A stretch of DNA of 64,000 nt. Origin: Macrostomum lignano. Its lineage: Eukaryota. The translations under genes and the position numbers were made by a program. The notes under the pieces are model-generated. The model did not search any database. It was not told the DNA's origin and worked only from the letters and a program-made list of their open reading frames with translations. Positions 6,001 to 25,272 of the stretch are shown here, piece after piece; position 1 is the stretch's first letter, and the number at the start of each line of letters is the position of its first letter. The DNA lies in assembly GCA_002269645.1 (NCBI GenBank), contig NIVC01000208.1:310001-374000 (forward strand), written 5' to 3'.

Positions 6001-9000
6001 GCGTAGTTGCCCTTGGCTGAACCGTCTTCTGTAGCGAAGAAGCCTGTGAAAAAGCAGTGTAGATTGGGGGGACTTGAGGTGACTTAAGTGTTGTAGAATG
6101 TCTAACAGGTCTAACAGGTGTGCATATCTAACAGGGTGTGTATATCTAACAGGTGTGAATATCTAACAGGTGTGAATATCTAACAGGTGTGGATGTCTAA
6201 CAGGTGTAGATATCTAACAGGTTTGGATATCTAACAGGTATGAATATCTAACAGGTGTGGATATCTAACAGGTGTGGATGTCTAACAGGTGTGGATATCT
6301 AACAGGTGTTAATGTCTAACAGATGTAAATGTCTAACATGTGTGGATGTCTAACAGGTGTGGATGTCTAACAGGTGTTAATGTCTAACAGATGTAAATGT
6401 CTAACAGGTGTGGATATCTAACAGGTGTGAATGTCTAACAGATGTAAATGTCTAAAATGTGTGGATGTCTAACAGGTGTGGATGTCTAATAGCTGTAAAT
6501 GTCTAACAGGTGTGGATGTCTAACAGGTGTGTATATCTAACAGGTGTGGATGTCTAACAGGTGTGGATATCCAACAGGTGTGGATATCTAACAGGTGTGG
6601 ATGTCTAACAGTTGTGAATATCTAACAGGTGTGGATGTCTAACAAGTGTAGATATCTAACAGGTGTGGATATCTAACAGGTGTGAATGGCATGAGTAGAA
6701 TAAGTGCTTTATGTCTAACATAATTTTACCCAGTGTTCCAATTCGATAATTTAGCGAAATCGCAACCAACTGATTGTAGCTGGCAAAGACGCTCAAATCG
6801 TAGGCATTTCCGGTGCCCCATTCGTAGCTCTCGCCGTGAACAAATATCACGACTGGCAACTTGCGCTCGGATACAATTGGTCCGGACTCTGTGGCGGTTT
6901 ATGGAGCATGTACTGAGTGTAACTTTATTTTAACTACCAAATTTAACAATGCACGGCTTGCAATGGTCTTTCAGAGTACGTTTGTACATCTCAGATCCTT
7001 TGGTGGGATCTGCTACCCTCTCAGATCCTTCAGTGGGATCTGCTACCCTCTCAGATCCTTCAGTGGGATCTGCTACCCTCTCAGATCCTTCGGTGGGATC
7101 TGCTACCCTCTCAGATCCTTCGGTGGGATCTGCTACCCTCTCAGATCCTTCGGTGGGATCTGCTACCCTCTCAGATCCTTCGGTGGGATCTGCTACCCTC
7201 TCAGATCCTTCAGTGGGATCTGCTACCCTCTCAGATCCTTCAGTGGGATCTGCTACCCTCTCAGATCCTTCAGTGGGATCTGCTACCCTCTGATTATTCG
7301 GTGGGATCTGCTACCCTCTCAGATCCTTTGGTGGGATCTGCTACCCTCTCAGATTCTTCGTTGGGATCTGCTACCCACTTAGATCCTTCGGTGGGGTCTG
7401 CTACCCTCTCAGATCCTTCGGTGAGATCTGCTACCCTCTCAGATCCTTTGGTGGGATCTGCTACCCTCTCAGATCCTTTGGTGGGATCTGCTACCCTCTC
7501 AGATCCTTTGGTGGGATCTGCTACCCTCTCAGATTCTTCGGTGGGGTCTGCTACCCTCACAGATCCTTCGGTGGGATCTGCTACCCTCTCAGATTCTTCG
7601 GTGGGATCTGCTACCCTCTCAGATTCTTCGGTGGGGTCTGCTACCCTCACAGATCCTTCGGTGGGATCTGCTACCCTCTCAGATACTTCGGTGGGATCTG
7701 CTACCCTCACAGATCCTTCGGTGGGATCTGCTACCTTCTCAGATTCTTCGGTGGGATCTGCTACTCTCTCAGATCCTTCGGTGGGGTCTGCTACCCTCAC
7801 AGATCCTTCGGTGGGGTCTGCTACCCTCTCAGATCCTTCAGTGGGGTCTGCTACCCTCTCAGATCCTTCGGTGGGATCTGCTACCCTCTCAGATCCTTCG
7901 GTGGGATCTGCTACCCTCTCAGATTCTTCGGTGGGATCTGCTACCCTCTCAGATTCTTCGGTGGGATCTGCTACCCTCACAGATCCTTCGGTGGGATCTG
8001 CTACCCTCTCAGATACTTCGGTGGGATCTGCTACCCTCACAGATCCTTCGGTGGGATCTGCTACCTTCTCAGATTCTTCGGTGGGATCTGCTACTCTCTC
8101 AGATCCTTCGGTGGGGTCTGCTACCCTCACAGATCCTTCGGTGGGGTCTGCTACCCTCTCAGATCCTTCGGTGGGGTCTGCTACCCTCTCAGATCCTTCG
8201 GTGGGGTCTGCTACCCTCTCAGATCCTTCGGTGGGATCTGCTACCCTCAGACCTCTTTTCGCTTTATTCCTTTTGCGTGGGCTAAGCAATCGGGCGGACA
8301 AAGGAAGCAAAATTGCCAATTTTTCGTTTTCAAAGCAGACATCACAAGTCGAATTGTTCAAATTAGAAACGGAGTTCAATATTCAATGCGGTATGGTCTG
8401 ACCTCACTCCTGCATTAGATTCTATTAGATAATATTTCTCTTTAGGCAAAATTGACTTAGGCTCGTACATAAGCATAGTAAGTTATTGAACATAATTTTA
8501 GCGATGTCAATAGACCTCTGCCATCTTGTCAGTTGACTTGTCGCTGGGTCTGTATGGAGACTAGAGCATTGACAGCATTTTTACTACAAGATCATTGGAC
8601 TTTTGATATTTTAGGCCTGTAAAATGATAGATTCTCTATCTTCAGAGGCTTAGAAATGTCTGTATCCAATTGTGAGCAGCTAGAAGATTGTTAGTGCCAA
8701 TCGAAATGCCAATCGAAAGCCTCATATATTCCGCGGAAAGAACTTCAAAAGGCAATAGAATAATTGGGTACAGAGAAAGGTAAAAAAGGATGATAATTTT
8801 TCTAGTCACTCGTCATCAGAGATTTGGTTGCCAGGGGGTGTGCTGAGGCGGGGTTAGGGCAAGCCGCACTGCCTGAGCCTGTAATTAAATCGATAATTGG
8901 CTTGGACTGAACAATTAGGAGGAATTCGATACCTTCATAATGCCGAATGCAGTTAGTTATAATAGCTGAGCATCTAGTCGAAATTGATATACCGGTAATC

Positions 9001-25272: not shown

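Follow-up and report, generated by a model that had tools for sequence, protein, structure and literature searches.

A gene within an intron of another gene on the same strand is found in the cholinergic locus, in which VAChT/unc-17 lies in the first intron of ChAT/cha-1, in animals that include a nematode with SL trans-splicing; the two genes have a 5' exon in common, are co-expressed, and are functionally linked. In Drosophila, 71% of the nested genes are on the strand opposite to the host (Lee & Chang 2013, PMC3814207), those on the same strand are mostly single-exon genes, and the expression of host genes is brain-biased (PMC3814207). In mammals (mouse and human), the orientations of nested genes are broadly similar, and long 5' introns are favoured by nested genes (PMC11694760). 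The initial annotation of the DNA analysed here stated that most nested genes are antisense to their host, which holds for Drosophila and barely for mammals. In the flatworm Macrostomum lignano, SL-resolved operons, or multi-gene transcriptional units, have been described (Wudarski 2017, PMC5730564; Ustyantsev 2021, PMC8629364), and the SL acceptor motif is [T/C]TNCAG (PMC8629364).

The locus described here is from M. lignano (assembly Mlig_3_7, contig NIVC01000208.1). All positions refer to the window, that is, the whole stretch of 64,000 nucleotides that was analysed, and the host and the nested genes are on its minus strand. Coordinates and domain assignments confirmed the proposal of the initial annotation that KGD4/MRPS36 and PPME1 lie complete, intronless, and on the host strand in the first intron of a neuroligin gene; the host is neuroligin-like, and the intron is its first coding one (Table 1).

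Table 1. Positions of the host exons, the nested genes, and the non-coding features in the window
Feature	Position	Strand	Remarks
TATATAA box	25341..25347	-	75 nt 5' of neuroligin ATG; candidate host core promoter; read from sequence
Neuroligin-like exon 1	25272-24669	-	ATG at 25272; hydrophobic N-terminus (by eye); start of COesterase domain
Intron 1 of neuroligin-like gene	6889..24668	-	17,780 bp; first coding intron; collinear in three contigs
Conserved non-coding block (ultra-conserved)	18720..20220		0.07-0.33% pairwise substitutions vs 2.4-3.1% background; contains ATTTGCAT and TGACGTAA
Second conserved non-coding block	14690..15470		0-0.5% substitutions; 0.8-1.5 kb 5' of KGD4; contains ATTTGCAT and TGACGCAA
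TTTCAG, SL-type acceptor ([T/C]TNCAG) of KGD4	13927..13932	-	22 nt 5' of ATG; this copy only
KGD4/MRPS36 (Mlig032594)	13904-13596	-	intronless; intact; 102 aa
AATAAA	13157..13162	-	first canonical poly(A) signal 3' of KGD4 stop (434 nt), beyond 24-bp minisatellite; three copies; putative use
TTTCAG, SL-type acceptor of PPME1	11640..11645	-	51 nt 5' of ATG; window copy and copy 2
PPME1 (PP2A methylesterase; Mlig026503)	11588-10170	-	intronless; intact; 472 aa; Pfam matches
ATTAAA	10022..10027	-	candidate poly(A) signal, 143 nt 3' of PPME1 stop; three copies; putative use
Neuroligin-like exon 2	6888-6730	-	acceptor cacAG; encoded peptide includes ...NYRIGTL-G
Neuroligin-like exon 3	6043-5858	-	encodes GHGYGAA
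Neuroligin-like exon 4 (start)	1..161	-	extends past window edge

The host gene and its conservation in three copies

Predicted splicing of exons 1-4 gives 1110 nt encoding 370 aa with zero stop codons. The donor of exon 1 is GTGAGT after position 24669 (phase 1), and the last A of exon 1 forms a Lys codon with the first AG of exon 2, the frame being kept. Pfam assigned a single COesterase stretch to the product (residues 90-355 against profile positions 23-239; 199 bits, E 2e-58), exon 1 alone scoring 37 bits; the in-frame join without a domain gap, as initially annotated, was therefore upheld. The mature joining of exons 1 and 2 is predicted from the frame, the continuity of homology, and the conserved splice sites. 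Among PDB entries, NLGN1-4 matched the exon 1-4 composite with E values of 1e-51 to 1e-54, followed by bile-salt lipase (7e-32) and the cholinesterases (~1e-27), and the alignment with NLGN1 passed uninterrupted across the exon 1/exon 2 joint, a position which we take to be splice site A of vertebrate neuroligins. The canonical esterase motif is GESAG. At the nucleophile position, the host has Tyr (GHGYGAA) and not Ser, aligned with Gly of the GSGAGG of NLGN1. As read from the sequence, the catalytic serine is replaced, as expected for neuroligins, and the predicted protein is neuroligin-like by similarity of the carboxylesterase fold.

When the whole window was searched by tblastn with eight homologues, COesterase pieces were found at exons 1, 2, and 3 only, in consecutive order. 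The window was thus taken to hold neither further, hidden COesterase exons nor another paralogue, and with this single set the possibility that exon 1 belongs to another paralogue was set aside. The assignment of an ORF at 62-64 kb to POLA1 was not confirmed by Pfam.

The arrangement is present in three contigs of the assembly, from which its structure, its integrity, and its conservation can be read directly. Copy 2 (NIVC01002003.1) carries an unbroken series of sedlin, exon 1, KGD4, PPME1, exon 2, and exon 3, and copy 3 (NIVC01002433.1) is collinear from window-equivalent position 24065 (~600 bp below exon 1) past position 1. The substitutions between the three copies amounted to 2.4-3.1% for the intron background and 0.5-1.9% for exons 1-3. 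Exon 1 of the window differs from that of copy 2 at 5 of 603 nt (98.5% identity of the protein), with the donor conserved; the acceptor and the donor of exon 2 are the same in the three copies, and the host splice sites are kept in all copies compared. In copy 3, exon 4 is an open frame of at least 846 nt (at least 282 codons). Of the signal peptide, single transmembrane helix, and cytoplasmic tail with a PDZ-binding end that are typical of neuroligins, the sequence covered shows, by eye, a hydrophobic N-terminus; the C-terminal part of the protein falls outside the window. Exons and nested coding sequences are less diverged than the intron background, or changed mainly at synonymous positions, and all nested ORFs are intact in all three copies.

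The nested genes and the surrounding intron

The KGD4 ORF matched the Pfam family PF10937 (Kgd4-YMR31) with 35.4 bits (cut-off, 22; E 3.8e-8) over the conserved C-terminal two-thirds, and no meaningful sequence match was obtained for it in PDB. The synonymous and non-synonymous changes in the three comparisons between copies were 8/0, 4/3, and 4/3. The PPME1 ORF aligned with human PME-1 (PDB) over the full length, from the N-terminal motif to the C-terminal GC (E 1e-82), including the segments GHSMGG, IDVVEG, and GHAVHED, which presumably hold the catalytic Ser, Asp, and His of PME-1. Its coding sequence diverged by 0.8-0.9% between copies, as compared with the intron background given above, with zero indels. 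As far as the database shows, the nested loci are the only copies of KGD4 and PPME1 in the genome. Exact-protein look-ups with KGD4, PPME1, and their homeologs returned genome contigs only and zero RNA assemblies, and neither of the gene IDs, Mlig026503 or Mlig032594, was mentioned in the literature or supplements searched.

Upstream of each nested ORF is a TTTCAG acceptor (Table 1). Copies 2 and 3 read CTG at the AG of the KGD4 acceptor, and copy 3 has TTTTATG in place of the PPME1 acceptor, by which the AG is lost. In the window copy, the first codon of the deposited KGD4 CDS, at 13925, is not ATG and lies 1 nt past the acceptor, and thus the mRNA model starts at the TTTCAG acceptor; processing of a longer precursor would fit this start as well. 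Since the sense strand of the intron has 65 occurrences of [T/C]TNCAG, such a motif near an ATG is weak evidence.

Intron 1 contains several minisatellites as well as the two conserved non-coding blocks. The block at 18720..20220 had no match in Pfam, and the Rfam search of the intron for non-coding RNA gave no match at E values up to 0.1. The block at 14690..15470 is a candidate promoter or enhancer; the conserved blocks could instead be host enhancers or gene-conversion tracts, and not a promoter of the nested pair.

A retroposed origin of the intronless genes was also considered. No A-rich tract (poly(A) remnant) adjoins either nested ORF. An SL-bearing mRNA as the source of a retrogene would be suggested by the SL-like string 5' of KGD4 (TCAATTAATTGC), but its score of 19 did not reach the maxima obtained by shuffling (22-26), and it was attributed to chance; the SL 3' half gave no matches within 2-3 mismatches. 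The PPME1 proteins of M. lignano that were found are only these copies and poor older models, with no parent copy. A recent retrogene was therefore rejected; if the genes were retroposed, the event would be ancient, the copies having replaced the parent. The PPME1 gene of the trematode Paragonimus kellicotti is a multi-intron gene, and the synteny look-up returned no called neighbours of it within 10 kb.

Transcription of the nested pair and alternative explanations

The locus is a genuine host/nested arrangement, and we consider, with a probability of roughly 60%, that KGD4 and PPME1 form an autonomously transcribed cassette, and that the host is spliced across it. The independent promoters, the expression pattern of the host, and the read-through are those that we infer as follows. 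The pair would be transcribed from its own intronic promoter, for which the conserved block 5' of KGD4 is the leading candidate; the 5' ends may be formed by optional SL trans-splicing at the TTTCAG acceptors, and the 3' ends at AATAAA/ATTAAA. For the host, a TATA promoter of its own 5' of exon 1 would be used (the TATATAA box is unchanged in copy 2), with transcription that is presumably weak and limited to few cells, and splicing from the exon 1 donor would pass over the cassette and reach exon 2. No donor sites are added to the host pre-mRNA by the nested genes, as these are intronless. Their poly(A) signals would be two of the 17 hexamers (11 AATAAA and 6 ATTAAA) on the sense strand of the intron, all of which the host would have to ignore anyway. 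The neuronal host and the ubiquitous nested genes of the initial annotation are assumptions, and the words are used here in the sense of presumably neuronal and presumably ubiquitous.

It is possible, though unlikely, that KGD4 and PPME1 lack promoters of their own and are cut by SL trans-splicing and polyadenylation from the neuroligin pre-mRNA, or from read-through of upstream same-strand housekeeping genes, so that host and nested mRNAs share one primary transcript. M. lignano trans-splices 30% of its genes, 15% are in operons, and, among the assembled transcripts, ~7% are multi-gene precursors; all genes recognised in the window are on one strand, and both the acceptors of the window copy and the start of the deposited KGD4 CDS are in line with such processing. 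However, the acceptors are absent in two (KGD4) and one (PPME1) of the other copies while the ORFs remain intact, which speaks against the release from the host pre-mRNA being obligatory; production of these mRNAs hence cannot rest on excision from a long precursor at these sites. As to the release of the nested mRNAs by SL trans-splicing, one of the alternatives initially proposed, the presence of an SL-type acceptor motif at both genes stood, and, judging from the copies, the release is probably not obligatory. Where a cis donor lies upstream of an acceptor, this acceptor is used in cis-splicing (Conrad 1993, as quoted in PMC8629364); by this rule, exon 1 on the host pre-mRNA would join the nested acceptors and reach a stop after 2 or 12 codons. 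Housekeeping genes would, moreover, hang on a presumably neuronal promoter. An operon was previously defined by SL trans-splicing of both genes and a repeat-adjusted intergenic distance of less than 1 kb (Ustyantsev 2021, PMC8629364); the distance from the AATAAA of KGD4 (13162) to the acceptor of PPME1 (11640) is ~1.5 kb, or ~1.1 kb when the tandem repeat of ~0.4 kb is subtracted, and is borderline.

More speculative, and decidedly unlikely in our estimation, is that the nested and the neuroligin mRNAs are alternative products of one primary transcript, with SL RNA and the exon 1 donor competing for the TTTCAG acceptors, and that the gain and loss of acceptors among the homeologous copies reflect ongoing selection on this competition. 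If true, such an operon within an intron would couple, or trade off, a synaptic adhesion gene against mitochondrial and PP2A housekeeping functions.

The neuroligin-like gene might also not be a working host, exons 1-4 being remnants of a gene that was interrupted or silenced after the entry of the two genes, or exon 1 being in practice a separate short transcript. At neither of the two loci checked do the called genes of the transcript-based deposited annotation include a neuroligin model, the older models of the host begin at exon 2 or exon 3 only, and the nucleophile is not Ser, although this is what is expected of neuroligins. On the other hand, exons 1-4 are in frame and open and are 2-5 times less diverged than the adjoining intron, no copy differs from the others in its donors and acceptors, and exon 4 of copy 3 continues open as described above. 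With the same intact structure in three copies, a dead gene is improbable. That a misjoin put unrelated genes between exons 1 and 2, for which the neopolyploid and repeat-rich genome and the minisatellites of the intron might speak, can be practically dismissed, since the layout is shared by the second and third contigs, separately assembled, diverged to the extent of the intron background, and collinear, one of them continuous between sedlin and exon 3 with exon 1 included, and since a model in the older assembly joins PPME1 to COesterase exon 3 in one gene; the misassembly that was initially named as a refuting observation was thus excluded.

Comparison with known systems

The locus offers a clean, triplicated case of same-strand nesting in an animal with SL trans-splicing and working transgenesis, and is therefore usable to test the competition among a host donor, SL trans-splicing, and intronic poly(A) sites. 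The neuroligin-like gene is seemingly missing from the deposited annotation, and in the older assembly same-strand nesting led to gene models that are chimeric. Otherwise, knowledge of nested genes is unchanged.

As in intronic retrogenes, both nested genes are intronless, in comparison with the 49-kb PPME1 of P. kellicotti and with the M. lignano average of ~5 introns per gene; unlike them, KGD4 and PPME1 have no poly(A) remnant, SL remnant, or surviving intron-containing parent. As in the SL operons of M. lignano, conserved genes are adjacent on the same strand with [T/C]TNCAG near the ATG, and one mRNA model begins at the acceptor; unlike in these operons, the pair is inside an intron of another gene, the acceptors vary among the three copies, and the spacing is borderline with regard to 1 kb. 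The locus shares with the cholinergic locus a same-strand gene in the first intron of a gene of neuronal type, whereas neither a shared exon nor an evident functional link is present here.

The layout is known from flies and mammals, and the case is thus a tidy example rather than a surprise: same-strand, single-exon nesting in long 5' introns of brain-type hosts is already described, and the case fits this known pattern. As in the same-strand nested pairs of Drosophila, mouse, and human, the guests have a single exon each, share the strand of the host, and lie wholly in one long 5' intron, the host family is expressed in the nervous system, and the functions of host and guests are not evidently linked. 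Unlike in the catalogued pairs, the guests here are not young testis-biased duplicates; they are conserved housekeeping genes, two in tandem, in an organism with SL trans-splicing.

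Host gene and nested genes

Splicing of the four host exons gave a stop-free frame of 1110 nt, the product of which aligned with Pfam COesterase in one stretch (residues 90-355, profile positions 23-239; 199 bits); exon 1 by itself scored 37 bits. In tblastn searches, eight homologues matched the window at host exons 1, 2 and 3 only, in consecutive homologue residue order (for example, residues 15-70, 76-118 and 118-154 of the homologue P0003, respectively), and no further COesterase fragment was found in the window outside these exons. For the PDB comparison, the host product was lengthened with an older-assembly model corresponding to exon 4 of the copy on contig NIVC01002433.1 (100% over 282 codons). 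The extended composite matched neuroligins 1-4 at E values of 1e-51 to 1e-54 (next family, 7e-32), and the NLGN1 alignment was continuous across the exon 1/exon 2 junction, over a segment that holds splice site A in vertebrate neuroligins. Thus, the in-frame join of exons 1 and 2 without a lost domain block, as described in the initial annotation, was confirmed at the sequence level, and the possibility that exon 1 came from a different paralogue was refuted. The nucleophile motif is GHGYGAA, in which Ser is absent. Since the transmembrane and cytoplasmic parts lie beyond the sequence covered, the neuroligin-like identity is established for the ectodomain only. Gene calls at the window locus (exons 2-4) and in the copy on NIVC01002003.1 (exon 1, L006 15532-16134) included no neuroligin model; the deposited transcript-based annotation thus appears to lack the host gene.

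Features of the host locus and its neighbourhood (window positions)
Feature	Position	Strand	Remarks
Host exon 1	ATG 25272 to 24669	minus	donor A|GTGAGT, phase 1
Host exon 2	6888-6730	minus	preceded by cacAG; GTAAAA after 6730
Host exon 3	6043-5858	minus	acceptor ttcacAG, donor GTGAG
Host exon 4	starts 161	minus	continues past window edge
TATATAA box	75 nt upstream of host ATG	minus	kept on NIVC01002003.1
KGD4 ORF	13904-13596	minus	102 aa; Pfam Kgd4-YMR31 above gathering score; Mlig032594
PPME1 ORF	11588-10170	minus	472 aa; end-to-end with human PME-1, E 1e-82; Mlig026503
TTTCAG acceptor	13927-13932	minus	22 nt before KGD4 ATG; fits [T/C]TNCAG
TTTCAG acceptor	11640-11645	minus	51 nt before PPME1 ATG; fits [T/C]TNCAG
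Conserved non-coding block	18720-20220		host intron; single-copy
Conserved non-coding block	14690-15470		host intron, 0.8-1.5 kb upstream of KGD4; single-copy
Minisatellite	6989-8248		intron 1; 30 bp x 42
Minisatellite	6109-6688		intron 2; 17 bp x 34
Minisatellite	13162-13455		between KGD4 stop codon and its first AATAAA; 24 bp x 12
Minisatellite	12002-12414		between nested genes; ~33/66 bp units
Sedlin/TRAPPC2	30862-30449	minus	intronless; TTTCAG 37 nt upstream of ATG
CCA-adding/poly(A)-polymerase-family gene	~37.6-35.3 kb	minus
Protein kinase	~47-45.4 kb	minus

The two intronless genes described within the first host intron are indeed intact, each being encoded on the host strand by an unbroken ORF. 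In PPME1, the GHSMGG, IDVVEG and GHAVHED motifs align with human PME-1 segments that hold the catalytic Ser, Asp and His. In the deposited annotation, no other gene was called between KGD4 and PPME1 or elsewhere in the host intron, and no other M. lignano PPME1 was found in the database beyond these copies and poor older models thereof. Gene models from the older M. lignano assembly (P0079, P0001 and P0005; UniProt A0A1I8JNH.., A0A1I8HYD0 and A0A1I8I0S3) are distorted by the nesting: one is a frameshifted PPME1 fused to COesterase exon 3, and another begins at exon 2 and runs into intron 3. Neither a poly(A) remnant nor a spliced leader (SL) remnant was found at the nested genes; a retroposition origin, if so, would be ancient. 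In the trematode Paragonimus kellicotti (L007; LOND01001089.1), PPME1 is a multi-intron gene of ~49 kb, with no neighbouring gene called within 10 kb; thus, neither intronlessness nor nesting is general in flatworms.

Probable expression of the nested genes

In M. lignano, a free-living flatworm, ~30% of genes are trans-spliced to a 35-nt SL, ~15% are in operons, and ~7% of assembled transcripts are multi-gene precursors (PMC5730564, PMC8629364); [T/C]TNCAG is the motif reported for SL acceptors (PMC8629364). In the window copy, the first codon of the deposited KGD4 CDS (13925) is not an ATG and lies one base past the acceptor, with an in-frame TAA just upstream; therefore, the mRNA model begins at the acceptor, as expected of an SL-guided boundary pipeline (PMC5730564). 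All recognisable genes in the window are on the minus strand, and those at 25300-64000 may form a same-strand gene cluster; an acidic long ORF (63899-62445, minus) considered as a DNA polymerase alpha N-terminus was not confirmed by Pfam.

The SL reading is weakened because the sense strand of the intron holds 65 [T/C]TNCAG sites and because the acceptors are altered in other copies with the ORFs intact: that of KGD4 is TTTCTG in both other copies (four substitutions within 24 nt), and that of PPME1, kept as TTTCAG on NIVC01002003.1, reads TTTTATG on NIVC01002433.1. Trans-splicing of the SL to these acceptors would be optional at most. When the host exon 1 donor is joined to the KGD4 or PPME1 acceptor, the frame stops after 2 or 12 codons. 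On these two grounds, we favour (probability about 0.6) KGD4-PPME1 as an autonomous cassette with its own intronic promoter, for which the conserved block nearest upstream of KGD4 would be the leading candidate. The nested 3' ends would be formed at the conserved AATAAA (13162) and ATTAAA (10027), and host exon 1 would be spliced over the cassette to the downstream host exons. The main alternative, that the nested mRNAs are processed from the host pre-mRNA or an upstream read-through precursor, appears doubtful.

Homeologous copies and sequence constraint

The M. lignano genome (Mlig_3_7 assembly, NIVC01) is neopolyploid and repeat-rich (PMC5730564). An exact-protein search with the 472-aa PPME1 ORF located the window copy on NIVC01000208.1 of GCA_002269645.1, with the window covering 310001-374000 of that record. 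On NIVC01002003.1 (L006 and L003, joined by exact overlap), sedlin, exon 1, KGD4, PPME1, exon 2 and exon 3 are found in one layout, with the exon 1 protein 98.5% identical and its donor kept. On NIVC01002433.1 (L004/L005), collinearity extends from window-equivalent 24065 to past position 1, the sequence compared ending ~600 bp before exon 1. Pairwise substitutions among the three copies amount to 2.4-3.1% in ordinary intron sequence, 0.8-0.9% in the PPME1 CDS (no indels), 0.8% in host exon 1 (window against NIVC01002003.1) and 0.5-1.9% in host exons 2 and 3; in the KGD4 CDS they reach 2.3-2.6% and are mainly synonymous (8/0, 4/3 and 4/3). Host splice sites are all identical in the copies. The lower or synonymous divergence and the identical splice sites thus indicate that host and guests are both maintained, and a non-functional host is unlikely. 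Since the intron divergence marks three separate loci, not copies of a single assembly error, misplacement of the nested genes by misassembly is extremely improbable, and the possibility of a misjoin between 6.9 and 24.6 kb was not upheld.

The two non-coding intron blocks differ by 0.07-0.5% among the three copies, being ~10x more conserved than the sequence around them and exceeding every exon. Each has the octamer ATTTGCAT near a CRE-like site, TGACG[TC]AA, on the minus strand, and five of the six ATTTGCAT sites in the window are in the host intron. Neither block matched Pfam or Rfam; both could represent enhancers or promoters, or else gene-conversion tracts. Minisatellite copy number varies among the homeologous contigs.

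Comparison with known nested genes

The statement that most nested genes are antisense to their hosts stands for Drosophila (71%; PMC3814207) but barely for mouse and human, in which over one-tenth of genes are in host/nested pairs and the orientation bias is slight (PMC11694760). In Drosophila, 72.5% of same-strand nested genes are single-exon, often originating from RNA intermediates, and hosts are enriched for brain expression (PMC3814207); mouse and human nested genes prefer long, 5'-most introns (PMC11694760). The M. lignano locus fits these descriptions closely. Less usual are guests that are conserved housekeeping genes, apparently sole copies, their tandem arrangement as a pair, an animal with SL trans-splicing, and a layout retained in three homeologous copies.
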